64,000 nucleotides of DNA from Macrostomum lignano (lineage: Eukaryota). Where the stretch lies: assembly GCA_002269645.1 (NCBI GenBank), contig NIVC01000446.1, positions 496,001 through 560,000 on the forward strand. The letters are read 5' to 3'. Under the pieces are notes generated by a model. The model had not been told where the DNA came from. It did not search any database and saw only the letters and a program-made list of their open reading frames with translations. This document shows positions 16,724 to 57,890 of the stretch, one piece after another. Each line of letters begins with the position of its first letter. Within the stretch, counting starts at the first letter, position 1. The position numbers and the translations under genes are program-made.

Positions 16724-17026
16724 CTACAGAGTTGAGAATCGGATTTCAAATAAAAGCAAAAATTCGCCAACTTTATACTACTACTGTTGCTGCTGTGTGC
16801 AGTAGTATTTTAGAGAAAGATAATCTAAATTTACTTAAAAAGCAACTTTGTTTTAATTGATTATTTCGAAGACTTGCTTGTCGAAATTAAGGATAATTAA
16901 AGAATTAAACCATGGTTTTGTTTATTCGCAACCTATGGCCATCATTTTATCGCTCGATAATTTCTCCTTGCAGACAAATAATCAAGCAGAAAAGCTATAA
17001 GTGGCTATAAATCAATTTAAGCAAAC

Positions 17027-17615: not shown

Positions 17616-18761
17616 CTGAAGCAAATGGTATCACGGCACAGAATGCTAAATCCCGAATTTTGAGAAAAATTTCTTGCACAAGAATTACATTCTATCCTAG
17701 TAGCTACTCTCATTGTGAAGAAAAGAATCAAGTTAGAGCAGAATGGAACTTTGCAAACTATATCTTTCAAACTTTTGATTGGCGCCTAAACGCCAGGGTT
17801 ATGACACTCAGCAGCCAAATGCTAACTAGCTCTGTACGCATGCAGGGAGGAAGACCGAACACCTATACTAGCGCATATGCTTTGGGCCATAGACAAACCG
17901 AATGGTAAGTATGAATTTTACAGTCATGGTCTCAAATCCAGGTTTCTAAGTTTTCATGTTTTTGGAGAGGGGGAGCTATCTTAGGTTTTTTGAGGCTACG
18001 GACACCCTGTAGAGTATCATCGAGTATACAGGTAACTTGCTGGGTAGACTAACAACTTCTGCCTCAACTAATCTCATCCCAATACTAAAATCAATGGAGT
18101 CACATACTTTCATTCTATCATTTTCACAAAGTTATATGTCATCATGACGCATCAACTAATTTTGGCATCCTGTCCTGAATTCGAACCTCTGATCGGATAC
18201 CAAGTTGGCATCCTGTTTTTTTCTAACCTGGATGCATTTAAATAGTTCCATATTTTCTATAACTCATTTTGTTTAAAATACCTATACTGAAATAATTACT
18301 GGGATTTAAAGGCTTCTATTAACTGTTAAATTTGAGTAATCTGTAGGTGATAGACTCGGCAGTGTAAAATATATTGCAGATATGTTGAGGTTTTCAATTT
18401 GGCTGAATTTCCTGAATTTGATGGACCTAGGACGTCGAAATGGCACTGCGATTCTAGAGGCAACTTCAACGTACATACAGAGTGCTTTTTTATAAATTTG
18501 GTTCAAAACTCATAGGTCTTAACATGACGCTTTAATATCACTGGGGGGGGGGGTACTGGACTCCGCAATAATCTCCATATCAAAAAGCAGCTGCCCCTTT
18601 GCCCTCCGACTCTGTCACGCGGTGTCTGACACCACGGAATTACTAATAGTAGTGCTTCCTGACTCAGTCGTAATAAAATGTAAAAAAAACATGATTTTCC
18701 AATGATAATATCTAAAACTCGATGCCTTCTATGGCATCATGAAAAGAGACAGGATACTTAC

Positions 18762-26400: not shown

Positions 26401-26793
26401 AATTTCTCAGTCAGCCAGTATCAGTCTCATTTCAAGTTAGCAATATGGTTACGCAATTTTAATCAAGTCGTGTGTGCATTTTTTCGGCACTGTTTTCAAC
26501 TTGTTGTGATGCAATCTTTATCACAATCGGAATTGAGCCAGTCAGTTTTTTCTCTAGCATTCTTACAATGCATTTCAAGTCGAAAAGTTTGCTTGACCTT
26601 TGCAAAAAAGCATGTTTTTCGAATATTTATTCCCTTTAACATTGAGCAATTTCTTAGCCAAGATGCATGTACCGTCCCAGGAAAATTTCTGATCGAATGG
26701 TGCAAGTTTGAAGAAAATCGGTTGAGCCAATTTTTCTGAAATCAATCGCATAGCTACAAACATTTCATTTTTAGTATATTGGTGGAGGAAGGA
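23422..26793 (-). mobile_element. Non-autonomous Helitron-like element, family A, copy 1
   Basis: Minus-strand 5' TCCTTCCTCCACCAATATACTAAAAATG. 3' hairpin ccccc-aac-ggggg, then gcgaagattgCTAG|T. Internal 18-bp (AGATAGCAAGCATCCCCC, ~23570-23680) and 22-23-bp (TTTAATGTTTGACATGGTGGCTC, ~23760-26190) minisatellites. Confidence 0.8.
26257..26315 (-). other. tRNA-like (Pol III B-box) segment inside family A element; also at ~29528-29586 and ~31809-31867
   Basis: Minus strand agatagccctgatgcg...cctGGGTTCGAATCtt: good B box, weak A-box-like TAGCCCTGATG. Confidence 0.5.
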
Positions 26794-29700: not shown

Positions 29701-30062
29701 ATTTAAGTTGGCAATATGGTTACGCAATTTCATTCAAGTCGTGTGTGCATTTCTTTGACACTGTTTTCAACTTGTTGCGATGCAATCTTTATCACAATCG
29801 GAATTCAGTCAGTCAGTTTTTTCTCTAGCATTCTTACAATGCATTTCAGGTCGAAAGAGCTGCTTGACCTTTGCAGAAAAGCATGTTTTTCGAATATTTA
29901 ATCCCTTTAACATTGAGCAATTTCTTAGCCAAGATGCATGTACCGTCCCAGGAAAATTTCTGATCGAATGGTGCAAGTTTGAAGAAAATCGGTTGAGCCA
30001 ATTTTTCTGAAATCTATCGCATACCCACATACCCACAGACAACTCATTTTTAGTATATAGGA
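26794..30062 (-). mobile_element. Non-autonomous Helitron-like element, family A, copy 2
   Basis: 5' TCCTATATACTAAAAATGAG. 3' hairpin + CTAG joined directly to the TC of copy 1. 18-mer array ~26930-27400, 23-mer array ~27490-29450. Confidence 0.8.
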
Positions 30063-32356
30063 CTAGCAATCTTCGCCCCCCGATGGGGGACATCTGGATA
30101 GAATCTCTGTTCTCTACAATTAACAAAAAGACAGCCAAAAAATCCTTCACAAATACAACAGACAAACTGCTCAAATGAAGTGAATTGCAATAAGAAATCT
30201 TCCCAAGACCACAAGCATCCCCCAGATAGCAAGCATCCTCCAGATAGCAAGCATTCTCCCAGATAGCAAGCATTCCCCAGATAGCAAGCATCCCCAAGAT
30301 AGCAAGCATCCCCCAGATAGCAAGCATCCCCCAAGATAGCAAGCATCCTCCAGATAGCAAGCATCCCCCAGATAGCAAGCATCCCCCAGATAGCAAGCAT
30401 CCCCCAGATAGCAAACATTCCCCAGATAGCAAGCATCCCAAGATAGCAAGCATCCCCAAGATAGCAAGCATCCCCAAGATAGCAAGCATCCCTCAGATAG
30501 CAAGCATCCCCCAGATAGCAAGCATCACTCAGATAGCAAGCATCCCTCAGATAGCAAGCATCCACCAGATAGCAAGCATCCCTCAGATAGCAAGCATCCC
30601 CCAGATAGCAAGCATCGCCCAGATAGCAAGCATCCCCCAGAAAGCAAGCATCCTCCAAATAGCAAGCATCCCCCAGATAGCAAACATCCACCAGACAATA
30701 AGTAGCTAGAGCGACAATTTCCTTAGCTTTATAGTGGCTCCTTTAAATTGGCATGGTGCTTTATACCTTTACATTTGAAATTGGATATCTTGAATGTTTG
30801 ACATGGTGGCTCTTTTATGTTTGAAATAGTGGCTCTTCTATGTTTGACATGGTGGCTCTTTTATGTTTGACATGGTGGCTCTTCTATGTTTGACATGGTG
30901 GCTTTTTTAGGTTTGACATGGTGGCTCTTTTATGTTTGACATGTTGGCCTTTTAATGTTCGACATGGTGGCTTTTTAATGTTTGACATGGTGGCTTTTTA
31001 ATGTTCGACATGGTGGCTCCTTTAGGTTTGAAATGGTGGCTCTTTAATATTTGACAATGTGGCTCTTTAATGTTTGACATGGTGGCTCTTTTATGTTCTA
31101 CATAGCTGCTCTTTTATGTTCGACATGGTGGCTCTTGTATGTTCGACAGGGTCGCTCTTTTAGGTTTGAAATGGTGGCTCTTTAATATTTGACAAGGTGG
31201 CCCTTTAATGTTTAACATGGCGGCTCTTTAATGTTCGACATGGTGGCTCTTTAATGTTCTTAATGGTGTCTGTTTTATGTTTGACATGGTTGCTCTTTTA
31301 TGTTTGACATGGTGGCTATTGAATGTTCGACATGGTTGCTCTTTAATGTTCGACATGGTGGCTCTTTAATGTTTGACATGGTGGCTCTTTAATGTTCGAC
31401 ATGGTGGCTCTTTAATTTTCGACATGGTAGCTCCTTTAGGTTTGAAATGGTGGCTCTTTAATGTTTGACATTGTGGCTCTTTAATGTTCGACATGGTAGC
31501 TCCTTTAGGTTTGAAATGGTGGCTCTTTAATGTTCTTAATGGTGTCGGTTTTATGTTTGACATGGTGGCTCTTCTATGTTCGACATGGTGGCTCTTTAAA
31601 GTTTGACATGGTGGCTCTTTAATTTTCGAAATGGTGGCTGTTTTATGTTTGAGAAGGTGGCTCTTTTATGTTCGACATGGTGGTTCTTTAATGTTCGACA
31701 TGGTGGCTCCTTTAGGTTTGACATGGTGGCTCTTCTATTGCGCTTTTTTTATGTTTAGCAGATTTTTTGGTTTGAAAGTGTTTTAATAAAAAAATTATTT
31801 TGCGCTTCTAAGATTCGAACCCAGGTCGCTACATTAGCATTCCAGTCTGTTCGCATCAGGGCTATCTCTTTTCAATTGGAGAACATGAATTGTGGCCCTT
31901 AAAATTCAATTCTTACAGCAAGTCAATTGGAGTAAAAAGTTATGACATAATCAATTTCTCAGTCAGCCAGTATCAGTCTCACTTCAAGTTAGCAATATGG
32001 TTACGCAATTTAAATCATGTCGTATGTGCATTTCTTCGGCACTGTTTTCAACTTGTTGTGATGCAATCTTTATCACAATCGGAATTCAGTCTGTCAGTTT
32101 TTTCTCTAGCATTCTTACAATGCATTTCAAGTCGAAAATTTTGCTTGACCTTTGCAAAAAAGCGTGTTTTTCGAATATTTAATCCCTTTAAAATTGAGCA
32201 ATTTCTTAGCCAAGATGCATGTACCGTCCCAGGAAAATTTCTGATCGAATGGTGCAAGTTTGAAGAAAATCGGTTGAGCCATTTTTTCTGAAATCAATCG
32301 CATACCCATATACATACATACATACATACATACAGACAACTCATTTTTAGTATATA
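30063..32356 (-). mobile_element. Non-autonomous Helitron-like element, family A, copy 3
   Basis: 5' TATATACTAAAAATGAG followed by (TATG)n. 3' hairpin + CTAG|TC junction at 30063/30062. 18-mer array ~30205-30690, 23-mer array ~30790-31735. Confidence 0.8.
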
Positions 32357-35178
32357 CGAGTGGAACTCCTCCTTCGGAGGAGAAAGGGGAAGAACTCCCA
32401 TCACCGGAATTCCATTCCCTGAAATATCCATCAACTGAAATTCCATGTCTTGAACCCTATCTTCCAAATCGTCTGCAAATTCTTTACAAACCTTTCAAGG
32501 ACCATAGCTCAAAGACTCTTACGTCTCTCATATCTCCTCTCTCCTCTCTTAACTATTATCGTGACTCTCTTCTCTCTCCTCTCTCTCATCTCATCTCTAC
32601 CCCTACTCTCTTATTTATCTCTACTCTCTACTCCTTGTCTATCGTCTCTCTTAACCCTCTCTCTCTTCTCTTTTCTCTCCTCTCTGCTCTCATTTTTCAT
32701 ATCTCATATACGCTCTCACACTCTACTTTCTTGTCTCCCATCTTTCTTTCCTCCTTTCCACTATTCCCTGTCTCTTCTCTTCTCTCTTTTCTATTCTCTC
32801 TATTCTCTCTTTTCTCCTCTCCTTGCTCCTTTCATCTTCTCCCCTCTCTTCTCTAATCTCTAATCTCTTCTCTCTTATGTTCTCACTCATCTCTTCTCAT
32901 CGCATCTCTCATCTCTCCTCTCCTCACTACTTTCCTCTCTTAACTCTCTCATCTCTGATCTTTCATCTCTCTCCTCTCTCTCCTCTCATCTCTACTACCT
33001 TATTTATATCTTCTCTCTGGTCTTTCGTCTCTACTCTCTCCTGTCTCATTTCTCCTCTCTTTTCTCCTCTCTTCTCTCTCCCCTCCTCTCTTATCTCTCC
33101 TCCCTCATCTCACTCTTTCTTTCTCCTCTACTCTCCTTTCTCTTTTATTTCCTCTGTACGCTCTTATCCCTCCTCTCTTCTCTCTCCTATCATCTCTCTT
33201 GTCTCCCTCTGCTATCTCATATCTCCCCTCTCATCTCCTCTCTCCTCTTCTCTTCTCTCCCCTTCGTTCCCGCCTTACTCCCCTCTTCTCTCCCATCTGT
33301 CATGTCTAATCTCTGCACTCATTTCTACTCTGTTGTCTATCATCTCATCTCTCTTCTCTTTTCATTGTTCTCTTTACTCTCTTCTCTGAGTGATGAAGAT
33401 GCCAAATCCATCAAGATCCTCTCCGCGAAGCAGTCTGTGCAACTGAAAATCAAAATCGTTTCCATAAAACAGAAATCAATCATAAATTATCTCCGCGAAA
33501 CAGAAATCCTGTCTGTGCAACTGAAAACCATCGAAATCCTCTCCGTGAAACTGGACTCCTTCAAAATCCTCTCCTTGAAACTTAAATTTATCAAAATCGT
33601 CTCCATAAAACAGAAATCAATCATAAATTAACTCCGCGAAACAGAAATCCTCTCCGTGAAGCTGAACATCATCGAAATCCTCTCCACGAAACAGAAATTC
33701 TCTCCGTCAAAATTAAAACATTGAAATCGTCTCCGCTAAACTGGACTTAATCGAATTTTTTCCGTCAAACAACTCAACTCTCCGGATTCATTGGTTAGGG
33801 TTAGGGTTAGGGTTAGGGTTAGGGTTAGAACTGCGCACAGGTTCGTGTTAAAAGGCACTGATAAAAATATTGAACTAATTGAATCAATTCATTGCGCAAC
33901 CGATTTCACAGTCAGTCAGTATCAGTCTCAGTTAAAGTTAACAAAAACATTGCGCAATCTAAATCAACCCTCCAATACACAGCAGCAGTGAGAAGTTGAA
34001 CCCTCCCCCCAACTTTATCTATTACGTCTCGCAAAACTGAGTACAATCTTTGCAGCAAGTTAAAAGTATGGAAATAGTTTTTCAAATGCTGTGCTTTTTA
34101 TTTTTTATATTTAAAGCAAACAACTTATATCCCCGAACTCAGCGTTGCAAGATCTTTCCAGCAATATAAGTCTCTCCTCTCAAAGTTTAAAACTCGAGGA
34201 ACAGTTAGCGTTTGAAATTTACCAATTTCCCGACTGCTTGACTGAGAGGCTCGCAAGTTTGTTCATTGAATTTCATTGCCAAGCTAATACACAGGGCCGA
34301 TAATAAAACCAATTGAATCTCGACACAGTCTATCTATTTACACTGTACAACTGCTATGTACACTCAGCCCAAGCCCTACCCCCGTTCTGGGAAAACCATT
34401 AAATTTAACTCAACCCACTCAATATGAAAATCAGTCTATAGCCCATGCACCTCCCCAAATGCACAGGGAGAGTCTAGGCTTGTGCATTGCACAGTCAGAA
34501 TTGAAATTAATGAAACCCCTCCCCAGCCACTTAACGTTTTCACAATTGAAATCAAGAAATTTTCTATGACAAATTGCTCTGATGCAGTTGAGATTTCGGA
34601 ACAGAAAAGTATACCATTCTGTTCAGTTTTTCAAACTCTTTCCAACGGTGTGATTCACTTTTCTGTAGCTTCAAAATTGAAAGCAGAAATTAAGGTGCAA
34701 GTTTTCCCGTTTCTTACTTACAGAGCGCAATGTACACTCGGAGTTAAAATCAAGCCAATCCATTCTCGCGCAGTGTGCACCTCCACCCCATTTTAACACT
34801 GAGCAAGTAGGCAGGCCCGACCGCCGCCAACCAATTCTCGTCTCAAATGCCGGTACCCCTCCCACAGCTGAAATGAAATACACTGCAGAGATAGGAGAAA
34901 AGTTGTGGCGCAACCATACAAAATAGCGCCAAGTGGCAAGTCCATGGAATGCGATATATAGACATCTGGTTGTCTGGTTTGTGCTGTTTTCTGCTTTTTT
35001 GAAGCACTTAAAATTGAAATTTGAAAATGAATTTTAAACTGTAGCATCGTCGGGACATTTGACATGTTTTGGTACCGGTTTGAAAGTTGAGTTGCAAGAA
35101 TCCTAGGAGGAGATCGTCGACAAACCCGGCCCACCGGCCCACCCTACCACCGGACCACGACGTCAGCTTTAGTAAAGA
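32357..35178 (-). mobile_element. Non-autonomous Helitron-like element, family B, copy 1
   Basis: 5' TCTTTACTAAAGCTGACGTCG. 3' 7-bp hairpin ctcctcc-gaa-ggaggag, then ttccaCTCG|T. Contains a CT-rich tract, ~30-bp degenerate repeats and TTAGGG x5. Confidence 0.75.
33795..33828 (+). repeat. Interstitial (TTAGGG)n; also at 35459-35480, 38798-38825 and 41730-41763
   Basis: 3-5 perfect telomeric hexamers plus TTAG at the homologous position of every family B copy. Confidence 0.95.
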
Positions 35179-37169
35179 CGAGGCCAACTCCTCCTTCGGA
35201 GGAGAAAGGGGAAGAACTCCCATCACCGGAATTCCATTCTCTGAAATTCATCAGCTGAATCCCATGACCCGAATCCCATCATCCAACTGTTATCCAAATC
35301 TATCAAAATCCTTTCCGCGAAACTGAACACCATCGAAATCCTCTCCGCAAAACAGAAATCCTCTCCGTGAAACTGAAGAACATCGAAATCCTCTCCGCGA
35401 AACTGGACTCAATCAAAATTTTCTCCGTCAAAAAGAATAAAATATCAGGATTCATTGGTTAGGGTTAGGGTTAGGGTTAGAGTTTGAGCTGCACAGAGCT
35501 GCGACTACAGGGCCCGATAAAAAATTGAGCTAATTGAATGTATAGATTGCACAATTTATTTCTCAGTCAGTCAGTATCAGTTTCAGTGAAAGTTAACAAA
35601 AATACTGCGCAATCTAAATCAACCCTCTAATACACAGCGACCGACACCCCTTTTCAATACGCAGTGGCAGATAGAAATTGAAGCCTCCCCCGCCTAACTG
35701 CTCGGGGTTCGGTTGAACGCCATTGAACCCGAAAATGAGTACAATCTTTGCAAATCGTTTGTTGGATGCTGTGCTTTAAGTTTTCATATTTAAAGTAAAC
35801 AACTTATATCCCCGAACTCAGCGTTGAAAGATTTTTCCAGCAATATAAATCTCCTCTCTCAAAGTTTAAAACTCAAAGAGAATTTAGCGTTTGAATGATC
35901 CCGTTTTAAAGCATTGAAAAATCCAGTGTACGTGCACTGCGTACTAAAGAGGCTCGCAAGTTTATTCATTCATTTCACAGGCTGGCTATAACACAGGGCA
36001 GCCTATTGAAAGGCAGAGATAATAAAACAAATTTATGGCGCAATCAATTTATTTCTCAGTCAGTCAGTAAGAGTCTCAATTAAAATGATCGCGCAATATA
36101 AATCAACCCTCCAATACACAGCGACCGCACCCCTCCCCCCCCCCCACTAAAGCACACTGAGCAATTAGAAATTCAACCCTCGAACTTTATCTATTATGTC
36201 TCGCAAAAATGAGCACAACTTTAAAAAAAGTTAAAAGTATGAAAATAGTTTTTCGAATGCTGCGCCTTTTCTTTTCATATTTGACTTGACTTGAGAAGCA
36301 TCAGTTTATATGGAATTCAATCATAGGAGAGTTGAAAAATCAATGAGCTTTCGCTATTTGGACTGTGTACACTGCGGTAATTTATTTATTTAATCTCAAT
36401 ATTATCTCCAGCCAATCACTCAATATGAAAATCAGTCTATAGCCCATGCACCTCCCCAAATGCACAGGGAGAGTCTAGGCTTGTGCATTGCACAGTCAGA
36501 ATTGAAATTAATGAAACCCCTCCCCAGCCACTTAACGTTTTCACAATTGAAATCAAGAAATTTTCTATGACAAATTGCTCTGATGCAGTTGAGATTTCGG
36601 AACAGAAAATTATACCATTCTGTTCAGTTTTTCAAACTCTTTCCAACGGTGTGATTCACTTTTCTGTAGCTTGAAAATTAAAAGCAGAAATTAAGGTGCA
36701 AGTTTTCCCGTTTCTTACTTGCAGAGCGCAATGTACACTCTGTGATGAGTTAAAAAATCAAGCCATCCATTCTCGCGCAGTGTGCACCTCCACCCCTTTT
36801 TAACACTGAGCAAGTAGGCCGCCAATTCTCAAGTGCCGGCGACCCTCCCCCAGCTAAAATGAAATACACTGCAGAGATAGGAGAAAAGTTGTGGCGCAAC
36901 CATACAAAATAGCGTCAAGTGGGAAGTCCATGGAATGCGATATATAGACATCTGGTCTGGCTGTCTGGTTTGTGCTGTTTTCTGCTTTTTTGAAGCACTT
37001 AAAATTGAAATTTGAAAATGAATTTTAAACTGTAGCATCGTCGGGACATTTGACATGTTTTGGTACCGGTTTGAAAGTTGAGTTGCAAGAATCCTAGGAG
37101 GAGATCGTCGACAAACCCGGCCCACCGGCCCACCCTACCACCGGACCACGACGTCAGCTTTAGTATATA
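35179..37169 (-). mobile_element. Non-autonomous Helitron-like element, family B, copy 2 (short, lacks CT-rich tract)
   Basis: 5' TATATACTAAAGCTGACG. 3' hairpin + ttggcCTCG|TC junction at 35179/35178. TTAGGG x3. Confidence 0.72.
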
Positions 37170-40100: not shown

Positions 40101-40291
40101 CTTTTTTGAAGCACTTAAAATTGAAATTTGAAAATGAATTTTAAATTGTAGCATCGTCGGGACATTTGACATGTTTTGGTACCGGTTTGAAAGTTGAGTT
40201 GCAAGAATCCTAGGAGGAGATCGTCGACAAACCCGGCCCACCGGCCCACCCTACCACCGGACCACGACGTCAGCTTTAGTATATAGATAGA
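37170..40291 (-). mobile_element. Non-autonomous Helitron-like element, family B, copy 3
   Basis: 5' TCTATCTATATACTAAAGCTGACG. 3' hairpin + ttccaCTCG. Diverged CT-rich tract. TTAGGG x4. Confidence 0.72.
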
Positions 40292-43126
40292 CGAGTGGAA
40301 CTCCTCATTCGGAGGAGAAAGGGGAAGAACTCCCATCACCGGAATTCCATTCCCTGAAATATCCATCAACTGAAATTCCATGTCTTGAACCCTATCTTCC
40401 AAATCGTCTGCAAATTCTTTACAAACCTTTCAAGGACCATAGCTCAAAGACTCTTACGTCTCTCATATCTCCTCTCTCCTCTCTTAACTATTATCGTGAC
40501 TCTCTTCTCTCTCCTCTCTCTCATCTCATCTCTACCCCTACTCTCTTATTTATCTCTACTCTCTACTCCTTGTCTATCGTCTCTCTTAACCCTCTCTCTC
40601 TTCTCTTTTCTCTCCTCTCTGCTCTCATTTTTCATATCTCATATACGCTCTCACACTCTACTTTCTTGTCTCCCATCTTTCTTTCCTCCTTTCCACTATT
40701 CCCTGTCTCTTCTCTTCTCTCTTTTCTATTCTCTCTATTCTCTCTTTTCTCCTCTCCTTGCTCCTTTCATCTTCTCCCCTCTCTTCTCTAATCTCTAATC
40801 TCTTCTCTCTTATGTTCTCACTCATCTCTTCTCATCGCATCTCTCATCTCTCCTCTCCTCACTACTTTCCTCTCTTAACTCTCTCATCTCTGATCTTTCA
40901 TCTCTCTCCTCTCTCTCCTCTCATCTCTACTACCTTATTTATATCTTCTCTCTGGTCTTTCGTCTCTACTCTCTCCTGTCTCATTTCTCCTCTCTTTTCT
41001 CCTCTCTTCTCTCTCCCCTCCTCTCTTATCTCTCCTCCCTCATCTCACTCTTTCTTTCTCCTCTACTCTCCTTTCTCTTTTATTTCCTCTGTACGCTCTT
41101 ATCCCTCCTCTCTTCTCTCTCCTATCATCTCTCTTGTCTCCCTCTGCTATCTCATATCTCCCCTCTCATCTCCTCTCTCCTCTTCTCTTCTCTCCCCTTC
41201 GTTCCCGCCTTACTCCCCTCTTCTCTCCCATCTGTCATGTCTAATCTCTGCACTCATTTCTACTCTGTTGTCTATCATCTCATCTCTCTTCTCTTTTCAT
41301 TGTTCTCTTTACTCTCTTCTCTGAGTGATGAAGATGCCAAATCCATCAAGATCCTCTCCGCGAAGCAGTCTGTGCAACTGAAAATCAAAATCGTTTCCAT
41401 AAAACAGAAATCAATCATAAATTATCTCCGCGAAACAGAAATCCTGTCTGTGCAACTGAAAACCATCGAAATCCTCTCCGTGAAACTGGACTCCTTCAAA
41501 ATCCTCTCCTTGAAACTTAAATTTATCAAAATCGTCTCCATAAAACAGAAATCAATCATAAATTAACTCCGCGAAACAGAAATCCTCTCCGTGAAGCTGA
41601 ACATCATCGAAATCCTCTCCACGAAACAGAAATTCTCTCCGTCAAAATTAAAACATTGAAATCGTCTCCGCTAAACTGGACTTAATCGAATTTTTTCCGT
41701 CAAACAACTCAACTCTCCGGATTCATTGGTTAGGGTTAGGGTTAGGGTTAGGGTTAGGGTTAGAACTGCGCACAGGTTCGTGTTAAAAGGCACTGATAAA
41801 AATATTGAACTAATTGAATCAATTCATTGCGCAACCGATTTCACAGTCAGTCAGTATCAGTCTCAGTTAAAGTTAACAAAAACATTGCGCAATCTAAATC
41901 AACCCTCCAATACACAGCAGCAGTGAGAAGTTGAACCCTCCCCCCAACTTTATCTATTACGTCTCGCAAAACTGAGTACAATCTTTGCAGCAAGTTAAAA
42001 GTATGGAAATAGTTTTTCAAATGCTGTGCTTTTTATTTTTTATATTTAAAGCAAACAACTTATATCCCCGAACTCAGCGTTGCAAGATCTTTCCAGCAAT
42101 ATAAGTCTCTCCTCTCAAAGTTTAAAACTCGAGGAACAGTTAGCGTTTGAAATTTACCAATTTCCCGACTGCTTGACTGAGAGGCTCGCAAGTTTGTTCA
42201 TTGAATTTCATTGCCAAGCTAATACACAGGGCCGATAATAAAACCAATTGAATCTCGACACAGTCCTATCTATTTACACTGTACAACTGCTATGTACACT
42301 CAGCCCAAGCCCTACCCCCGTTCTGGGAAAACCATTAAATTTAACTCAACCCACTCAATATGAAAATCAGTCTATAGCCCATGCACCTCCCCAAATGCAC
42401 AGGGAGAGTCTAGGCTTGTGCATTGCACAGTCAGAATTGAAATTAATGAAACCCCTCCCCAGCCACTTAACGTTTTCACAATTGAAATCAAGAAATTTTC
42501 TATGACAAATTGCTCTGATGCAGTTGAGATTTCGGAACAGAAAATTATACCATTCTGTTCAGTTTTTCAAACTCTTTCCAACGGTGTGATTCACTTTTCT
42601 GTAGCTTCAAAATTGAAAGCAGAAATTAAGGTGCAAGTTTTCCCGTTTCTTACTTACAGAGCGCAATGTACACTCGGAGTTAAAATCAAGCCAATCCATT
42701 CTCGCGCAGTGTGCACCTCCACCCCATTTTAACACTGAGCAAGTAGGCAGGCCCGACCGCCGCCAACCAATTCTCGTCTCAAATGCCGGTACCCCTCCCA
42801 CAGCTGAAATGAAATACACTGCAGAGATAGGAGAAAAGTTGTGGCGCAACCATACAAAATAGCGCCAAGTGGCAAGTCCATGGAATGCGATATATAGACA
42901 TCTGGTTGTCTGGTTTGTGCTGTTTTCTGCTTTTTTGAAGCACTTAAAATTGAAATTTGAAAATGAATTTTAAACTGTAGCATCGTCGGGACATTTGACA
43001 TGTTTTGGTACCGGTTTGAAAGTTGAGTTGCAAGAATCCTAGGAGGAGATCGTCGACAAACCCGGCCCACCGGCCCACCCTACCACCGGACCACGACGTC
43101 AGCTTTAGTAAAGAGAGAGGAGGATT
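40292..43126 (-). mobile_element. Non-autonomous Helitron-like element, family B, copy 4 (near-identical to copy 1)
   Basis: Outer 5' end A|TCCTCCTCTCTCTCTTTACTAAAG at 43127/43126. 3' CTCG|TC junction at 40292/40291. Matches copy 1 at offset 7935-7936. Confidence 0.78.
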
Positions 43127-45508: not shown

Positions 45509-46217
45509 TCATTGGTACGATTTGTCCTCCGGGGGAGAATAAGCTGGCGGCGGCGCCTGGAGCGCTGGGTAGCCGCTGAAACCGGCATCGGCAGGTGGAG
45601 CGGACGCTGGCACAGCAGGATCGTGTCCCATAGGCTGTCTAGGATAAGCAGCCGTAGGTAAATTAGTAGCGACAGCACTGCCTGGAACAGGAGCGTAGGG
45701 CACAGGCGGGCCGGCCATTTGCATCGGTGGATGCGCAACGGCGTTTGGCTGCGGCACGTTTCGATTGCGTTGATTCTGTCGCGAGATGTATAGGTAAATG
45801 CCGAAACCGGCCCCGCAGCAACAGCAACAGCACAGTATAATTGACACTAACAGGACTGCCAACACGGGCCCGAATACAGCAGCATCGCCGTGATATCTAT
45901 AAAATTCCTCTTCATCGCAGCATCTCTGTTTCTCTTTACCGCAGCAATATTTAGAATCTTCATCATAATCCCATCCGATAGCGTCAGTGGGGCACACAAA
46001 ATATGAGTAGTTTTTCCCAACGCTAGGCCTGGTGGACAAGTCTTTATTAACTGGCGCCTTGAAACTGGGGCTCTCGCAGACGGCGATGTCATCGTAGGTA
46101 TTCAGATAGCTGTAGCCGTTCCCGTCACCGGTGGAGCTGAACTTGTGTCGCATGCGGCTGCCCACGTACACTGACCCAGCTAGGAGCAGCCGCTCCTTCT
46201 TCAGCGTGGACACGCCG
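45509..46217 (-). CDS. Shisa/CX-module-like type I membrane protein, exon 3 (Cys-rich ectodomain, TM, poly-Cys, Pro-rich tail with PPAY)
   Basis: C...C...CC...CC pattern, TM GPVLAVLLVSIILCCCCCCGAGFGIYLYI, PPPAY. Acceptor tgtttaacag|C (phase 2) matches the upstream donor. Confidence 0.85.
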
Positions 46218-46290
46218 CTGTTAAACATTGAGGGAATTTGCCACTTGTTGGTTTATAATTTGAGTCTTCGCAGTCAGAGACCGTGGGGAG

Positions 46291-46482
46291 GGGGGTTGTA
46301 GCCTAGTGGTTGTTAAGAGCGTAGGACTCACGACTGAAAGGTCGGGGGTTCGATTCTCCACCCATTCGGAACAATTTGTGTCCTTGAGCAAGACACCTAA
46401 CTCTGCATTGCTTCAGTTCACCCAGCTGTAAAATGGGTGCCAGCATTAGCTGGGCAAGTGTAATCAATTATTATTATATTTT
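46291..46482 (+). mobile_element. tRNA-derived SINE with CORE-like central domain (in intron 2 of the Shisa/CX-like gene)
   Basis: A box TAGCCTAGTGG (46299), B box GGTTCGATTC (46347), then tgtgtccttgagcaagacacctaac...cacccagctgtaaaatggg resembling the MIR/CORE consensus. AT-rich (TTA)-type tail. Confidence 0.8.
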
Positions 46483-46723
46483 TGGTTTCATTGATAAAGA
46501 AATAATAAACCGCCCAGGGTAAATTTGCATTTATAGAAAGCCGGACCATCGCAATATACAAAAATCGAAAACATTGCAATATTAAAATTAATGATATTAA
46601 AAATAGGCCTAGTGAAAATAACTAACTAGTTTAATTCCTTTTCAAAACTACGAGGCGCACTCGTAAGCACACAAGTATCAGCAATCACTAAAGGAATAAA
46701 ATTTAAAACCAATATAAACTCAC

Positions 46724-46910
46724 CCCATTCGTTGGAGAATGCCAACTGGCATGATGTAGTCTGACTTGCGAAATCCTCCACTTTTATATGGCGTGTAATA
46801 TGAGCGAGTATTCGATTGGAAAGAGCTTAAACGATTGCTTTGATCGCTTCTATAAGAGAAACTGCTGGAGTACCGATCAGAGGACACATAGCGCGTGGCT
46901 GCAGTGGCAT
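46724..46910 (-). CDS. Shisa/CX-like protein, exon 2 (Ser/Tyr/Arg-rich: ATAATRYVSSDRY...MPVGILQRMG)
   Basis: Acceptor ttttttgtaaacag|AT (phase 1), donor ATG GG|gtgagt (phase 2). Open throughout. Confidence 0.8.
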
Positions 46911-47417
46911 CTGTTTACAAAAAAATGATGTACATTTTCAAGTTTGTTAAGATGCAATATTTAATTTAATGCAATAAAAACTACATGTTCAAATAGTAGG
47001 CTAGTAGAATATATAGTACATTTACTATATGTACTATATAGTACAATACAATGTGAACATAATGTAATGAAAATGTTCTTCATAACCATTTTATTTGTAC
47101 ATTAATTAAACTTGAATCAAGGCTTAAATATATTGATAGTGTGCTATGTTGATTGCTATATAAAATTAAGCATTATATTGCATATAAAGTTTCTACTAAA
47201 CTAATAAATATAGACTTTGTAGGACATTATACATACTTGGGCATTAAATTGATAGTTATATTGTTTTTTGCAATAGGGATGCTATAGCATCTTTAATTTC
47301 GAAATTGCATCTTGAAATTTGACCTTATATACAATTTTGCATCTTAGTGCCAAAAAACCCCAGCTTATAAACCTAGATTAAAAAAGATTAATTTTTAATC
47401 TTTTTTAATCTTTTTAT

Positions 47418-47455
47418 ACCCTGACGACGGCCCTAGTGGGTTGAAACGCGTTGGT
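47418..47455 (+). ncRNA. Decayed minimal type I hammerhead ribozyme of Penelope-like-element type
   Basis: acc-CTGACGA-c-ggccc(tagt)gggtt-GAAAC-gc-GTT-ggt: conserved core, stem II with two G-U pairs, palindromic AACGCGTT stem III, 3-bp stem I. Confidence 0.6.
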
Positions 47456-48656
47456 TTTCGCCATAAATGTTGATCTTAAGCTTTATTTATTTGCTATTAA
47501 TTAAGCGAGCAACTCTACCACAATTAATTTTTTTTATTTTGATTCAGAAGACTTTTAAAATAAAAAACTACAAACTATTATCATAGACAAGAAATTCAAG
47601 AAAAGTTCTGACAAAATTACTGTTGTCCATATTGATTTAATTAGTTCTATATGAAGCCAGTCTATGCTGAAATCATATGATTTTATATTATTGAATATTT
47701 AAAAAAGAAATTTAAAAATTAAAAAAAACTTTGAAGAGCTTAGCTTAATTTAATGTTTTTAATCTCTAAAGATAATAAATAATAAATAAATAAAGTTACA
47801 GTTATAAAAGTTTTAAATAAACTTTCTACAAAACATACATTTGCTCTATTAGTGAACCTTAAAAGTTTAGAAATCAAGATATAAATATGTTTATCTAGTT
47901 TTTATCTGAAATTTACTTTCAAAAATATTTACAAAAAGCATATGTTTGGTAGAAAAACTAGAGTTATTAGACACTGGAGTCTAAGTCTTATGTTAGACTA
48001 TGGAGTCTCACTTAAACTTATACAATTGGACTATGTAAGAATTTTATAGTTTAAAGTTATATATATAATACACATAGATATATAACCTATGCATTTATAA
48101 ACCCTAGATTAGAATCATTTTGCTCTTGCTATAAACAACTAGAATAATTTAATGATTATAGTAATGATCATAGTAATTATAGTAATGTAATGATATGATT
48201 CAGATTAATCATTGCTAACCAATTGTTTTAAATAAATAAAAAATATCTAGGCCATTTATTATAATTTTTTCTTTGCTGGGTTGAATAAGGTAATTAAATT
48301 AAAACATTAATCTTTGTTCTTCAAAATTTAAAGCACCATTTTTTCTTTACAGTACAGATACAGTGCTATAGTGTTAGTGGCAAATAAGTAGAAAAACTAA
48401 CTATACAATTTCTCCATAGTATAGGACTCTCAAGCTTAATTTCTAGGCATTCTTTTTGTAAAATAATGAAGCCATTTAAGGCAAATATTAAAATATATAT
48501 TTTTCAAGTGTTTTGGTGCAATGACACTTTGTCCATCTAAGAAAAGCTATAGTTATAACTATTATATAATGCATATCTCAGTAAGTCTTTTTTACAGACA
48601 CTTACATTAGGTACGAAAGAAAACTGAATAGAAATCGCGAAGACGCGAATGTGTAC

Positions 48657-48720
48657 CTTGAGATAGCAGCGTAAGTAGGCCTAAACCAAACGCAATCACC
48701 AGATTCCGAATTCGATCCAT
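48657..48720 (-). CDS. Shisa/CX-like protein, exon 1 (signal peptide MDRIRNLVIAFGLGLLTLLSQ)
   Basis: ATG at 48720, hydrophobic core, donor CAA G|gtacac (phase 1). The three exons total 960 nt, giving 319 aa. Confidence 0.72.
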
Positions 48721-51603
48721 TTCGTAGTGCTCTGTAACTACAAAGTAAAAAAACCAGTCAGTTTGAAGGTAAATCCAAAATGCTTATTGTGACGGGTTGT
48801 TTTTTGCTTATTTAATGACTTGAAAACTTCCTAAAATTTTCACAAACACAGAGAAATCTAATGGCGCTATAGCCTCAACCAGCCCCAAGGTCAAGGCCAA
48901 AACCAAAACCAAAATTGTAAAAAGTTAGCTGTACTGTCTAAGAAATCTGCTGTTTAACATTTTAGGAATTGGTAACTCAATGACCATTAGAATGCTTAAT
49001 ATAGTAAGATACAAATAAAATACAAATCGAAAATATAGATTTAACAATTGAAGTTATTTTTCATTGTGTGTATTAGAGAAACACGTTACTTGTTGTTTTA
49101 CTTTTATTTTTTTCGGTGAATCAAAGACGAGTAAAAGATCCAAAGCATCTTAATCAGGGAACAGCAAACTCCGCGACGCCGCGTACCAAATCCCGCGAAG
49201 CCTCTTTATCCAGCCCTTTGGTCCAGCCCGCTTCAAGTTTAAACGCTTCTCAGCTTTCTTCTCTCTAATCGTCCTCTCCTATATCCTCTCCCTTCTCTCC
49301 TCCAATCGTTTTCTCTGCTTAACTCTCTCCTCTTGTCTCCTCTCCTCACCCCTGTCCTCTCTTTTCTGTTGTTGCTCCTCTCCTCTCCCCCTCTCCGATC
49401 TCTCCTCTCTCCTCTCTCCTCTCCTACATGTGTACATGTATGTATTGATCGCCTCTCCTCCCTTTCCTTATTCTCTCGCCTCTCCTTTCTCCTACTGTAT
49501 CTCTCTTCTCTCTTCTCTCTCCTCTCTTTTCCCTCTACTCTCCCCTTCTCTTGTTATGCGGCATATTCTCTATCTGGCCCTTGGGGCAAAAGGCGTGAAA
49601 TGATGTACATGTACATGTAGATGTAAAGATTTTCAGACTTTAACTCAAGGCGCCATAGTCCAAGCTTTATCAAACCGCGATAACTTTTCCGTTTACCAAG
49701 CGTAAGATCAGATAACAAGAAAAACAAATTGAGACACCTCATTCTATCTCTCATGCGGCAATTATGGCACTGTAGAGAAAATACTAACGATTGAATTATG
49801 AGATATTTAAATTAGAGTTAAATTGAATCTAAGATAAGCCAGTAAGTGGGCGCAGGGCCCAAACAAGTATATTTATATGACTTAATTTAGAGGGGGGTTG
49901 ACTCCAGATAATAAGGAGAGGGGTGAAGTGCGCGACTGAAGAGAGAGGCGAGAATGGAGAGCCAATCAGAAGGCAGCAAGGGAGAGAGAGAGATAAGAAT
50001 AACAAGATTGAGCTAGACAGAGAGAGAGAAAACAGAGTAAACAGAGACAAGTGAAGGTGAACTAAGAAATGACTAGGAAAGTCGCGACAGGCACTAACAC
50101 CTTTTTTACCTCCTATTTTGAACCAAAGTACGTCTTGTTCAAAAGAATTAAACAAGCAGAACTTCCACTTAAACACTTGAGAAATCTCAGCGCTTGTGGA
50201 AGTTTAACTCAAGCAAAGTCCATTTCTAATTGAAACAGATGAAATCCAATTCAGACTGACTGTGGCCGAAACTGTCCCTGAGTGAAGCGCACGCACAGAT
50301 TTGAAATTCAAAAGAAAAAAGTTTTCAAACAAACAAACATTCTATTTCGACAGAGATTTTTGCAGACTAGATACATTTTTTAACGACACCGAGTTAACGA
50401 CACCGAAGACTTGTAGATTCCGGACTACGTGCAGGTCAAGCGGCTTTCACCATACAGTCCGTTTATGACTCCTATGGACCAGTATAGACAAAGACATACG
50501 AGTAGACAAGAGGTGATATTCATATTGACATTTTGTCCTAAGTTTTCTTGAAATGGTCGAATTCCGGCCCTTGCCTTAAGCATGTATAAAATGCTACGTA
50601 CATGAGAGTGTGTAATATACATGTATAATTACTACCACATTTAGAGTCGAGAGGATTAAAAATATGAGGTTTTAGGCAAGTTAATTAAGGGCTCCATTGT
50701 TACAAACAGGCGTTTAAAGTAAAACAGGATGGCTTCGATCGCATTATATTTTTAATTGATGCCTTATCCATACAGCAGTTCCTATGGCTACATAGTTGCA
50801 ATCCACTGTTAATAAAACATTTCATATGAGCACTGAGTTTATAGTACTTTTAGAATCTAACGCACATGTGATGTATATCGAACAAATCCAATTCGATGGC
50901 AAATTTCTTCAAAATCTCATTAAGCACTATATATGCTTTATGCCTCAAATAAAAGTAATAATTTCGTGGAAAATATTTTCTGCTTTTTACCAGTAAAAAA
51001 GAATTAATTCATTCCAGCAGCTGCTAATGCATGTATCCATATTATATTGTAGCCCTTGGCAGTTTCTGACGAATGGCATTGAGCATGAGGGGCTCGCCTG
51101 CCCCTGCAGAATAGGACACATTCTTCCATTGAAAGCCAGGTCACGATATATGCATGCATATCCCAGGAGTTTAATGAATCAGCTTCATGAATGCAGCTTC
51201 ATGAATCGAAAATGAGATGTATAGATGATGTACATCATAGCTCAGTTCTGCAACACCCCCTACGGCGGGATACTGAGAATCAAGTAGATAAAGCCATTTG
51301 TCTTACCATCATTTTAGAACATCAGCATGTGATTACGAGCGTAAAGTTTATGTGTCGGAACAGTTTTACATCCTGTCAGCAAACTATAAGCTTGTAAATT
51401 AAATAACAACACGAAAGTGGTGCATGTGTTGTAATTGCAGAAGCTCAATTTTATGTGCTTACTTCAATAAGTCCATTGGGTTGGGAAAAGATCTTTCCTC
51501 AATCAGGTGGTAAAATACATCCAATAATCAAATGTCCTTATTTTGTTAAAGACCCTTCAATTTTGTTGTTTTGACGCTCGTGTCTTTTTCCGAGCAGACC
51601 GGG

Positions 51604-51969
51604 CTACATCTCTCGCTTTCCAAGCAGACCAGAGTACATCTCTCGCTTTCCAAGCAGACCAGAGTACATCGCTCGCTTTCCAAGCAGGCCAGAGTACATC
51701 TCTCGCTTTCCAAGCAGACCAGAGTACATCTCTCGCTTTCCAAGCAGACCAGAGTACATCGCTCGCTTTCCAAGCAGGCCAGAGTACATCTCTCGCTTTC
51801 CAAGCAGACCAGAGTACATCTCTCGCTTTCCAAGCAGACCAGAGTACATCTCTCGCTTTCCAAGACCGCGCTCCAACACCCGCTTAGAAGCAAGAGCGCT
51901 CTCTAGTTGACCAAAATTGTCCAGCAGAACATAGACTACCAGCAGCAGAAGCAGTGGATACTTCATCAT
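51604..51969 (-). CDS. Neuropeptide precursor: signal peptide, VLERGL-amide, 6x EMYSGLL-amide, 2x AMYSGLL-amide
   Basis: Hydrophobic N-terminus MMKYPLLLLLVVYVLL. 30-bp repeats encode KR-(E/A)MYSGLL-G-KR (dibasic cleavage plus Gly amide donor). A TAG at 51604-51606 cuts a ninth copy. Confidence 0.93.
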   Translation of the reverse strand: MMKYPLLLLLVVYVLLDNFGQLESALASKRVLERGLGKREMYSGLLGKREMYSGLLGKREMYSGLLGKRAMYSGLLGKREMYSGLLGKREMYSGLLGKRAMYSGLLGKREMYSGLLGKREM

Positions 51970-52603
51970 CTGATTTCTAGGAATGATTCTGTGCCAATCT
52001 AAAAAAATAATTGCTTGGTTTTTTGATCAAACTCAGAAAATGATGGACACAAACATTGACAAATAATCTTTTAAATTATTAAATGAAGTGTTGTTATAGT
52101 AAGGACATAGTTTAGGAGGTAATTCAAATTTGCTTTTGCGCTACTTTGAGTAGTTTTATTTCCAGAAATACCAGTAGATAGGTTAGTGAAGGCTTTGCGG
52201 GATGGGGGCACATGACGAAACCTGACGAGAGCTGCCCATTTGCAACGTTTTCCCAGATTTGAGAGAGAGTAAGCAAAATTTTAGAAATTTTAAGCATAAT
52301 TTTTCTTAAACCGACAGTCAATCTGAAGAAATGTCCATAAAAATTCGAGCACATTTCCTGAGCCATCCCAAGTGAAGAGAAGTACTCTAGCATCACGGAA
52401 TTTACATGCCTAGTCAGACAGTATTAAGAGGACTCAAGATAAGAGTAATGACTGCCGCAACTTCAGCGGAAAATGATTTCTAAGAAATACTGATTTTCTT
52501 GGTAAGCAAATAAAATGCAATTCGAAATATTTCCACTGACAAAATCAATACTGGTAGAGCCATTGAAATAGCTACTCAATCAGCGGGTTATTATGAGCGT
52601 AGA

Positions 52604-55207: not shown

Positions 55208-55895
55208 ATGAAATCCTCAATGCCTGCACCTTCGAATGCGCACTTGAATGTCCGCTTCGCCGACACAGCCGTCGTTCATTATCCGGCCCCGGAGCCGCTG
55301 TCCCCCACGCCGCTGGAGGTTGCAGCGGCTTCGATAAGCGACGGAGGCGGCGGCGGCGGCGGCAGCGGCGAGACTGGAGCGGAGGACAGCGGCTTGGCCA
55401 GCTTTTCAGGACCGCCTCGTTGCGGCCGAATCATTTCAAAGCGCGAGCTGCTGCAGTGCTTGAACGGGCCAGACTTTGATGCCAACATTGGCTGCCAGAA
55501 TGACCCAGAAACTGCAGTTGCAGACTCGTCTAACGTGAGCAACCTGAGCGGCGACTTGAACGCCATGGACCAGCAGTCTCAGCAGCGGCAGCAGCAGCTG
55601 AGCATGATACCGAAGTACCAGCCGATTAACAACGTACCGCCGCAGGTGGACAATCGAGGTGGCCGGGTCGCACGAGTAGCCACTGACAACATCAGGGAGG
55701 TGGCAGCTGCGGCAGTTGCAGCAGCAGCAGCAGCAGCCGCAGCCGCAGCCGCAGCGGCCGCCGCGGCCGGTGGTACAGACAAATCCAACATGGTCGGAAA
55801 GTCGACCGGAACGATGTCGTCCGCCCTGCGCCGCCGCAACCTTGCCAGCGAGAGAACAAGAAGCAAACAGTCCACCGTGTGCGCGATTCTGCTTG
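55208..55895 (+). CDS. TMEM272-like 4-TM protein, coding exon 1 (low-complexity N-terminus with poly-Gly/Gln/Ala)
   Basis: ORF from ATG 55208. Donor CTT G|gtgagg (phase 1) falls at the start of a hydrophobic stretch (TVCAILL). Confidence 0.7.
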
Positions 55896-56630
55896 GTGAG
55901 GCCTTCGACGATGTGGGTCACTTCTGGCACAGAGGCAGGACTGCCCATTCCGCTGACTTCTGAGCTCCCACAGGGTTTACAGCGGCGGTGATAGAGTCAG
56001 ACATTGATCTTTTGTTTGGTATGGCAATAGTTTTAAGCACCCATGGCCTGTTTGAAATTCCCATTGTTAAACCCAATGATAGCTATATAGAATTCCTACG
56101 AGAAAATTTGATGCTGAAAACACCCAAAACTGGTTAAACCATTGGTCAAAAAAGGAATTTTTAAAATTCAAATGTTGTTTACAAGTGTTCTAATGGTCTT
56201 TAAAAAAACTAACTTTGAAATCAGCAACCCCCCCCCCCCCCTACAAAAACTGCAAAACAATTCTTGGTACTTGCCTAAAAATCATGAACTTACAGGTTAC
56301 AGCAGTAGCAAGTGATGCTATTATAAGTAGTATCGTGCAAAAGAAAAACAAGGGGCAATTATAAATCTTTCTCGCAACCAAGAACGGCAGAGTTTTTGTG
56401 GAACTTTTTAATTAAACACCCATTATACTCATTTGGTTAGTGAAGAGAAAAGTCAGCAAACAATGAACAATTATCAATATTTATTATTGTTGATCAAGCG
56501 CGTCGCCACCGGAGGGTCCAGGGGGGCAGGTCTCCCCAGTGAAAGCTATGTGGGGACAGGCCAATGCTTTGTTCCCCCACTCAACCTTGTGACCCGTTAT
56601 GGAAATTAATAATCTTGCTTCAGGGCGACA

Positions 56631-57354
56631 AAATGAGTGCCTGCGGCGCTAAAATGAGTGCCTGCGGCGCCAAAATGAGTGCCTGCGGCGCCAAAATGAG
56701 TGCCTGCGGCGCCAAAATGAGTGCCTGCGGCGCTAAAATGAATGCCTGCGGCGCCAAAATGAGTGCCTGCGGCGCTAAAATGAATGCCTGCGGCGCCAAA
56801 ATGAGTGCCTGCGGCGCCAAAATGAGTGCCTGCGGTGCCAAAATGAGTGCCTGCGGCGCCAAAATGAGTGCCTGCGGCGCCAAAATGAGTGCCTGCGGCG
56901 CCAAAATGAGTGCCTGCGGCGCCAAAATAAGTGCCTGCGGCGGCAAAATGAGTGCCTGCGGCGGCAAAATGAGTGCCTGCGGCGCTAAAATGAGTGCCTG
57001 CGGCGCCAAAATGAGTGCCTGCGGCGCTAAAATGAGTGCCTGCGGCGCCAAAATGAGTGCCTGCGGCGGCAAAATGAGTGCCTGCGGCGGCAAAATGAGT
57101 GCCTGCGGCGCTAAAATGAGTGCCTGCGGCGCCAAAATGAGTGCCTGCGGCGCCAAAATGAGTGCCTGCGGTGCCAAAATGAGTGCCTGCGGCGCCAAAA
57201 TGAGTGCCTGCGGCGGCAAAATGAGTGCCTGCGGCCTCAAAATGAGTGCCTGCGGCGCCAAAATGAGTGCCTGCGGCGCCAAAATGAGTGCCTGCGGCGC
57301 CAAAATGAGTGCCTGCGGCGCCAAAATGAGTGCCTGTGGTACCAAAATGAGTGC
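56631..57354. repeat. 21-bp minisatellite (~34 copies) in the intron, preceded by a GC-rich MITE-like end at ~56495
   Basis: AAAATGAGTGCCTGCGGCGCC repeats. Confidence 0.97.
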
Positions 57355-57477
57355 TGAGAACACCGATTCTGAAAATAATGAAAACTGCAAGTCTAACACA
57401 AACTCAGCAAATTAAGTTGCAGTTTCGGCCGGCGCGAGTTTCTGTCATTTGTACCCACCTCAAAATTTGCCTTCCAG

Positions 57478-57890
57478 TGTTTCTGCTGCTCATCCTGCCC
57501 ATCACTATGGTGGTTGGCACTGTGACTCAGATCTCATCCGGCTGCCGAATCTGGTTGGACTCGCCCATCCTGCTCCTGGTCATCGGCCTGTGCTCAACCG
57601 TCATCGCAGTCATGGCGCCGCTGTTTCTCTTCCGACTGATGGGAATTCGCTGCCTTGAGGATCTGATCTCCATCTGCACGATTGCTGTCATCACCATTGC
57701 CCTGGGTGCCATCATCTTTGCGCTGTTGCTGGTGATCACCGGTGGCATGCTGTTCCACCCGGAGAAGCAGGAGCAGCACCGGGTGTGCAGCCAGTTCATT
57801 AAGAAGTTCATCATTGCCAGCGTCGCGGTGCTTTGGTTCTTCATAGCGCTGGCTCTACTGCTGTTCTGCTGCGACGTCATCATGTCCTGA
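57478..57890 (+). CDS. TMEM272-like 4-TM protein, coding exon 2
   Basis: Acceptor tttgccttccag|TG (phase 1) gives TVCAILL-V-FLLLILPITMVVG. Four hydrophobic helices, loop cysteines and a terminal CC resemble TMEM272 (from memory, not searched). Total 366 aa. Confidence 0.75.

Follow-up and report, generated by a model that had tools for sequence, protein, structure and literature searches.

The stretch of DNA analysed here (the window) comprises 64 000 nucleotides of the Macrostomum lignano genome (assembly GCA_002269645.1, contig NIVC01000446.1, positions 496 001 to 560 000 of the forward strand) and carries on its minus strand a short open reading frame (ORF) with the layout of a precursor of multiple amidated peptides. 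Unless another contig is named, positions are those of the window. The minus strand from 51969 to 51604 translates as MMKYPLLLLLVVYVLLDNFGQLESALASKR-VLERGLGKR followed by eight copies of (E/A)MYSGLLGKR, the dipeptide EM and a TAG stop codon; the part ahead of the eight-unit array reads MMKYPLLLLLVVYVLLDNFGQLESALAS-KR-VLERGL-G-KR. The frame is open on the 5′ side as far as 52026 and contains no in-frame ATG before that of the ORF itself. The N-terminus is signal-like as judged by the Kyte–Doolittle hydropathy averaged over 11 residues, a heuristic measure that peaks at 3.45 over residues 6–16, and candidate positions for signal cleavage lie after NFG (residue 20) or ALA (residue 27). A dibasic site and a glycine that could serve as amide donor are present for every unit (nine G-KR sites, eight units of identical length). 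The features of the locus are collected in Table 1.

The array is close to uniform. The eight units differ from one another at just two nucleotide positions, one giving GAG or GCG (Glu or Ala) and the other GGT or GGC, which are synonymous. The Ala codon GCG occurs in units 4 and 7 and GGC in units 3 and 6, the GGC-bearing unit directly preceding each Ala unit, and each of the two 90-bp higher-order blocks consists of the units E(GGT), E(GGC) and A(GGT). Tandem Repeats Finder (TRF) describes the array with a period of 30 bp, 9.3 copies, 95% matches and no indels, and extends it to 51864; the 3′ half of the VLERGL unit, GGTCTTGGAAAGCGA, retains its homology with the repeat. An earlier note, made from the letters of this DNA alone, had described a signal peptide, VLERGL-G-KR and eight (E/A)MYSGLL-G-KR units, all of which are borne out by the minus-strand translation, together with a 90-bp duplication marked by the Ala variant and the GGC codon, which proves to be exact. 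On the explanation preferred below, unequal crossing-over expanded the array and in doing so produced the exact duplication of the 90-bp block. Upstream of the ATG, the TTATTTTTTTAG tract is a candidate acceptor site for cis-splicing or spliced-leader (SL) trans-splicing, which we regard as only a lead; in M. lignano, trans-splicing affects 38.8% of the genes (PMC5730564).

Table 1. Features of the predicted amidated-peptide precursor locus in the window.
Feature	Position	Strand	Basis or remark
Complete single-exon coding sequence, predicted prepropeptide	51604..51969	-	121 codons plus TAG at 51604-51606
Predicted signal peptide region, residues 1-27	51889..51969	-	Hydropathy and translation
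n-region MMKY, then h-region PLLLLLVVYVLL, residues 5-16	51922-51957 (h-region)	-	
S-K-R, predicted first dibasic cleavage site, closing the short pro-segment QLESALAS	51880..51888	-	Translation
VLERGL-G-KR, predicted source of VLERGL-amide; decayed 27-nt first repeat unit	51853..51879	-	
Eight perfect 30-nt units (6 x EMYSGLL-G-KR, 2 x AMYSGLL-G-KR)	51613..51852	-	Unit table, TRF, pN/pS
Two identical 90-bp higher-order blocks (51643-51732 and 51733-51822)	51643..51822	-	Exact identity
Degenerate ninth unit GAGATGTAGCCCGGTCTGCTCGGAAAAAGA (EM-stop-PGLLGKR)	51583..51612	-	Its TAG is the stop codon
TTATTTTTTTAG polypyrimidine-AG tract, 30 nt 5′ of the ATG	51999..52010	-	Sequence

An open frame by itself proves nothing at this locus, because ORFs derived from minisatellites are abundant in the window and the 30-bp array is open in four of its six frames. 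The window is rich in micro- and minisatellites, many of which contain ORFs of 100–450 amino acids, and dozens of its minisatellites have periods that are multiples of three. In a six-frame scan of the whole window, the precursor was the only open segment with at least three G[KR][KR] motifs, of which it has nine.

Homologues were sought with the precursor as the query by scanning 1.84 billion representative proteins with HMMER, without an index. The top two matches are both proteins of M. lignano, PAA49395.1 (E = 3e-73) and PAA58165.1 (E = 1e-31), and within this collection YSGLL units are confined to M. lignano. The precursor retrieved nothing in a word-indexed search, although the database includes a paralogue that shares many 5-mers with it, and we attribute this null result to the limited performance of the index on repetitive sequence. 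A profile search added only a precursor of the RGLL type from the JGI collection (P0020) and one junk ORF.

The first match, PAA49395.1, is the product of BOX15_Mlig004832g1 on contig NIVC01003891.1 and is deposited as 'hypothetical protein, partial'. This gene (Mlig004832 in the following) has its own signal peptide, a SIFSGVL-G-KR segment, an acidic spacer, about 16 units of the form (D/A)MYSGLL-G-K(R/K) or AVYSGLL and a tail, SGSFASSKENNIRD. At the locus on that contig (10001–10794) a single unit, at 10571–10599, is 29 nt long, being one A short in GGAAAGCGA; it shifts the frame, and the GenBank model ends at 180 amino acids and is marked 'partial'. Read in frame past the 29-nt unit, the locus continues with five more units and then the tail SGSFASSKENNIRD and a stop codon. 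The short unit may reflect either a homopolymer error of long-read sequencing or a genuine frameshift. Mlig004832 and the window gene share the MYSGLL core, the G-K(R/K) sites and the 30-nt unit, and their arrays are 84–89% identical at the DNA level. They differ in that Mlig004832 is longer, has Asp or Ala but never Glu at the first position of the unit, and carries the additional SIFSGVL-amide segment, the acidic spacer, the C-terminal tail and a different signal peptide. EMYSGLL-amide and VLERGL-amide are encoded only by the window locus among the loci seen.

To assess selection on the peptide, the proportions of nonsynonymous (pN) and synonymous (pS) differences between the eight window units and 15 intact units of Mlig004832 were calculated in all six frames. 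In the reading frame the whole unit gives pS = 0.357 and pN = 0.053 (pN/pS = 0.147), and codons 2–10, which encode MYSGLLGKR, give pS = 0.359 and pN = 0.013 (pN/pS = 0.038). The other two sense frames have pN/pS values of 1.5 and 8.4, and the antisense frames have values of 0.37, 1.55 and 6.35, the lowest of these belonging to the frame that shares its wobble positions with the reading frame. The variable sites in codons 2–10 are third-position or Leu first-position synonymous sites with the exception of one M>V and two R>K exchanges, and the latter preserve the dibasic cleavage site. As judged from these codon comparisons, the peptide and its putative processing signals are shown to be under purifying selection within the family, relative to Mlig004832.

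The second match, PAA58165.1, is the product of Mlig014178g1 (Mlig014178). The GenBank protein seems to include a translated 5′ leader before the likely start, MLTLKLF, and the probable true ORF lies at 12670–13275 of contig NIVC01002405.1. It encodes a signal peptide followed by GAYYGLL-, GPYHRLL-, 12 copies of AG(Y/F)RGLL- and VYQRLL-, each then continuing with G-KR, and it aligns with the window protein across the repeats only. The models deposited for this assembly are transcript-derived, and transcripts overlapping repeats were removed before submission (Wudarski et al., 2017; PMC5730564). Because the models are transcript-derived, both paralogues have RNA support. The three predicted precursors, from the window gene, Mlig004832 and Mlig014178, are shown to form a three-locus M. 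lignano family of putative [Y/F]xGLL-amide precursors.

Beyond M. lignano, a 976-bp contig (JGI 3300030741, contig Ga0265459_10692127, GC content 37%) encodes ten GS(M/L)RGLL-G-KR units at positions 98–787 with many synonymous differences; this is an xRGLL-amide precursor from a eukaryote outside the named flatworms. The remaining HMMER matches were not accepted as evidence of orthology. They comprise precursors of GSEFL-amide, allatostatin-A (AstA), myomodulin, APRFL-amide and protostome tachykinin (FxGMR-amide), which match through the ...LGKR periodicity, and junk repeat ORFs. The Pfam ITAM domain (PF02189; E = 6.6e-13, 0 stretches) reported on the window precursor was likewise dismissed as spurious, being caused by the repeated YxxL. 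ITAM scores above the cut-off on the precursors of the window gene and of Mlig004832, the assignment being precomputed for PAA49395.1, and can mislead annotation.

The best explanation of the locus, to which we assign a probability of about 0.7, is that it is a small single-exon M. lignano gene for a secreted multi-copy amidated prohormone. The proposal of the earlier note that the precursor is of the neuropeptide type is supported by the hydrophobic N-terminus, the dibasic sites, the Gly donors and the purifying selection on the peptide frame. Cleavage by convertases, trimming by carboxypeptidase and amidation at Gly form an established general prohormone pathway. Following this route, the hydrophobic N-terminus would direct the protein into the endoplasmic reticulum, prohormone convertases would cleave following each KR, a carboxypeptidase would remove the basic residues and peptidylglycine α-amidating monooxygenase would carry out the amidation at each C-terminal Gly. 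Six copies of EMYSGLL-amide, possibly pyroglutamylated in part, two of AMYSGLL-amide and one of VLERGL-amide are predicted to result; the computed [M+H]+ values are 811.402 for EMYSGLL-amide, 793.391 for its pyroGlu form, 685.436 for VLERGL-amide and 753.396 for AMYSGLL-amide, with 797.386 for DMYSGLL-amide, the form specific to Mlig004832. By analogy with known prohormones, we infer that the locus is transcribed in neurons, that the precursor is processed and that the released peptides act through a G-protein-coupled receptor.

A number of observations weigh against an active gene. The GenBank annotation has no gene model at 51604–51969, and the exact precursor product is absent from the gene-call collection (exact-product look-ups for a neighbouring ORF and for the homeologue P0002 also returned no record). 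A BLASTN comparison of the window locus with the Mlig004832 locus found no similarity beyond the arrays, and the 39-residue N-terminus of the window gene has no detectable similarity to those of Mlig004832 or Mlig014178, which align with one another (E = 2e-5). The ninth unit has acquired its stop codon by a TAC>TAG change and also has an S>P replacement. No canonical AATAAA lies within 430 nt 3′ of the ORF, the only related hexamers being AATAAG at +62 and ATTAAA at +429. The intactness of the eight units carries little weight, because concerted evolution keeps arrays uniform. Finally, the signal of selection that is specific to the window lineage is thin. The consensus sequences of the window and Mlig004832 arrays differ at three sites only, the E/A site and two synonymous sites, and one additional synonymous polymorphism is present inside the window array, so that the signal amounts to about three substitutions (two fixed and one polymorphic, all synonymous); for a synonymous-site fraction of 0.27, we estimate a probability of ~0.02 that three neutral changes in MYSGLLGKR would be synonymous without exception.

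These observations would be accommodated by a silent or recently dead duplicate of a Mlig004832-type array, untranscribed or untranslated, that looks intact through array homogenization. The restriction of the homology to the array, the unrelated N-terminus, the premature TAG and the S>P replacement in the ninth unit, the missing model and product and the poly(A) signal not found nearby all fit such a duplicate, as does the large amount of duplicated DNA in M. lignano DV1 (PMC5730564). We nevertheless consider it unlikely, while regarding it as the most serious of the alternatives. One would not expect a randomly inserted array fragment to lie beside an in-frame ATG with a hydrophobic core of 12 residues immediately after it, together with a KR site and one more G-KR unit; no frameshift or internal stop codon interrupts the 121 codons; and the differences from Mlig004832 within MYSGLLGKR are synonymous apart from the M>V and R>K exchanges described above. 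The missing model is accounted for by the repeat filter of the annotation: since the gene consists mostly of a tandem repeat and such a filter was applied, the absence of a model is to be expected and is uninformative about expression. On the preferred explanation of an active gene, the window copy probably arose when an array was moved to, or retained beside, a different 5′ end that encodes a signal peptide, because the window locus and Mlig004832 are homologous only within their arrays.

The second alternative accepts a real secreted gene and proposes that its products are not neuropeptides but exocrine or pheromone-like peptides of a reproductive, adhesive or pharyngeal gland. This appears improbable. 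Multi-copy G-KR precursors of amides of 6–7 residues are typically neuronal or endocrine. No sequence feature specifies the cell type. Planarian prohormone genes are also active outside the central nervous system (CNS), an example being npp-2 in the penis papilla, but npp-2 is at the same time expressed throughout the CNS (PMC2953531). The last alternative, a non-coding ORF that arose by chance from a 30-bp minisatellite in a genome full of repeats, is close to refuted: window minisatellites do yield ORFs of comparable length, the array is open in other frames and many of the HMMER matches to the precursor are junk repeat ORFs, but the substitutions are periodic at the third position, the reading frame has the lowest pN/pS of the six, a second, transcript-supported locus encodes the same peptide with different codons, and the combination of a signal-like N-terminus with nine G-KR sites is unique within the window.

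The supplement of Collins et al. (2010) contains two planarian precursors that resemble the window gene, both filed there under 'miscellaneous amidated peptides' (PMC2953531). Smed-spp-13 (...KK-FRGLL-GKR-VHAKR-FRGLL-G) was detected by mass spectrometry as KK.FRGLLa.GKR, and Smed-npp-2 contains RGLI-GKR six to seven times (PMC2953531). A cestode precursor, Npp-24 of Taenia crassiceps, ends with ...KR-FKPKMPIFLGLI-GKRK (PMC11196405 supplement). Because the planarian FRGLL-amide was detected as the amide, flatworms process such sites as assumed here. The FRGLLGKR of Mlig014178 is an exact match to spp-13 and joins the family of the window gene to a flatworm-wide [F/Y]xGL[L/I]-amide group. An aromatic residue at position −5 followed by G-L-[L/I]-amide is common to Y-S-G-L-L-G-KR in the window, F-R-G-L-L-G-KR in spp-13 and Mlig014178 and F-L-G-L-I-G-KR in Npp-24. 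Position −4 is Ser in all eight window units and Arg in spp-13, npp-2, Mlig014178 and the JGI precursor P0020.

The likeness to each of these relatives has its limits. Smed-spp-13 shares with the window gene the aromatic-x-G-L-L-amide ending, the G-KR processing sites and its occurrence in a flatworm, but has only two copies and Arg at −4, and the pairwise match between the two (E = 0.01) is confined to the motif. Smed-npp-2 is similar in having a tight multi-copy array after a short N-terminal region and a G-L-[I/L]-amide ending, but its peptides end with Ile-amide and are merely 3–4 residues long. Npp-24 differs from the window gene in that it yields a single-copy 12-mer (FKPKMPIFLGLI-amide) with an Ile-amide end. 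The flatworm [F/Y]xGL[L/I]-amides are the nearest named relatives of the window gene, closer than buccalin or AstA, and the putative precursor is a new, unannotated member of a Macrostomum [Y/F]xGLL-amide family allied to planarian spp-13 and npp-2. The earlier note had been unable to assign the motif to a named family; the motif can now be tied to spp-13, npp-2 and Npp-24. Its suggestion that the precursor may be undescribed or lineage-specific is in keeping with the restriction of YSGLL units to M. lignano and with the literature, in which the papers searched, with McVeigh 2009 and Koziol 2016 outside the coverage, did not include one that mentions MYSGLL, YSGLL, RGLLamide or the Mlig identifiers. 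McVeigh et al. (2009), who reportedly mined expressed sequence tags of M. lignano, may already list the paralogue Mlig004832. A literature match to a coral 'GLLamide' was discarded as a synthetic control peptide.

Outside the flatworms, three groups of peptides bear comparison with the window peptide. AstA peptides end with [Y/F]xFGL-amide and buccalins with [F/Y]xGGL-amide. Like the window peptide, they occur in multiple copies, are L-amides and have an aromatic residue at −5 as well as a Gly close to the C-terminus, but the window peptide ends with GLL rather than with FGL or GGL. The loose AstA- or buccalin-like character that the earlier note attributed to the peptide is retained as far as the multi-copy L-amide and the aromatic residue are concerned, although the ending differs and the flatworm amides are closer. 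AstA precursors are present among the HMMER matches, where the similarity is driven by the ...L-G-K-R periodicity. The AstA motif is defined in PMC6188537, and flatworms have AstA-like receptors for which a ligand has yet to be reported (PMC6114109).

The second group, the tachykinins (deuterostome FxGLM-amide and zebrafish NKBb, FVGLL-amide), shares with the window peptide the pattern aromatic-x-G-L-hydrophobic-amide. This pattern is matched better by FRGLL-amide and FLGLI-amide than by YSGLL-amide, which has only G(−3) and L(−2) of the tachykinin signature, with Tyr in place of Phe and Leu in place of Met. The predicted FKPKMPIFLGLI-amide of Npp-24 resembles the tachykinins of the substance P type (xPKxxxFxGL-hydrophobic-amide). 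A 2019 review, which is relevant to this likeness, knows of no flatworm tachykinin. The C-termini of tachykinins are FxGLM-amide in deuterostomes and FxGxR-amide in protostomes, and the group is listed as undiscovered in flatworms (PMC6880623). The third group, the molluscan LASGL[V/I]-amides, shares the -S-G-L-aliphatic-amide ending and a multi-copy precursor (the scallop precursor of this type has 11 YxxxSLASGLI-amide copies), but has L-A where the window peptide has M-Y, and the likeness is at the level of the motif only. Because the defining C-termini of AstA, buccalin and the tachykinins are absent from its peptides, the gene was not filed under any of these families. The MYSGLL-, FRGLL-, RGLI- and FLGLI-amides might together represent the flatworm branch of a bilaterian family whose ligand is at present listed as missing from flatworms, either of the tachykinin type or as the ligands of the orphan AstA-like receptors, but we regard this as doubtful. 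Were it true, the Macrostomum family would have grown by array duplication and the capture of a new signal-peptide exon.

In the part of the window from 35509 to 58720, which is 100% identical to the sequence of contig NIVC01000446.1, GenBank has two models, the Mlig029235 gene (45509–48720, minus strand) and a gene for a protein of 366 amino acids (55208–57890, plus strand). The ORF at 45509–46228 on the minus strand is 100% identical to M. lignano BOX15_Mlig029235g2, a gene on the strand of the precursor and 2.9 kb downstream of it. Its product has a Cys-rich region, a single transmembrane segment and PPxY motifs and has no Pfam match; we take it to be VOPP1/WBP1-like. Further away, an exon for a RING-H2 finger (zf-RING_2, E = 4e-7) is present at 17012–17770 on the minus strand. 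No tRNA genes were found in the 64-kb window.

Several other repeats are present. A 2.8-kb segment occurs twice, at 32348–35182 and 40284–43117, about 7.9 kb apart; the two copies are 99.8% identical and contain identical ORFs, and represent either a segmental duplication or redundancy in the assembly. Positions 1–4651 hold three blocks of ~1.3 kb, each with a 54-bp array and with long ORFs in several frames; the blocks have in common a minus-strand ORF tail, ...QRMPQSTRTILKSLAMPTL. A higher-order pattern of ~3.3 kb occupies 23569–31734 and is made up of alternating 23-bp arrays, with as many as 105 copies, and 18-bp arrays.

The neuropeptides of M. lignano, a transgenic flatworm model that regenerates, are poorly documented in the accessible literature. 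The MYSGLL core is found in a second gene of this worm as well, the longer Mlig004832, and the window locus would add EMYSGLL-amide, a locus-specific peptide that is directly testable. The locus also indicates that public annotation, by filtering repeats, can overlook multi-copy neuropeptide genes entirely. The practical impact is incremental unless the link to a bilaterian family is proven. For the flatworms as a whole, linking the MYSGLL-, AG(Y/F)RGLL-, FRGLL/RGLI- and FLGLI-amides defines a flatworm-wide [F/Y]xGL[L/I]-amide group, which could be paired with orphan receptors that are candidate drug targets in parasitic flatworms.

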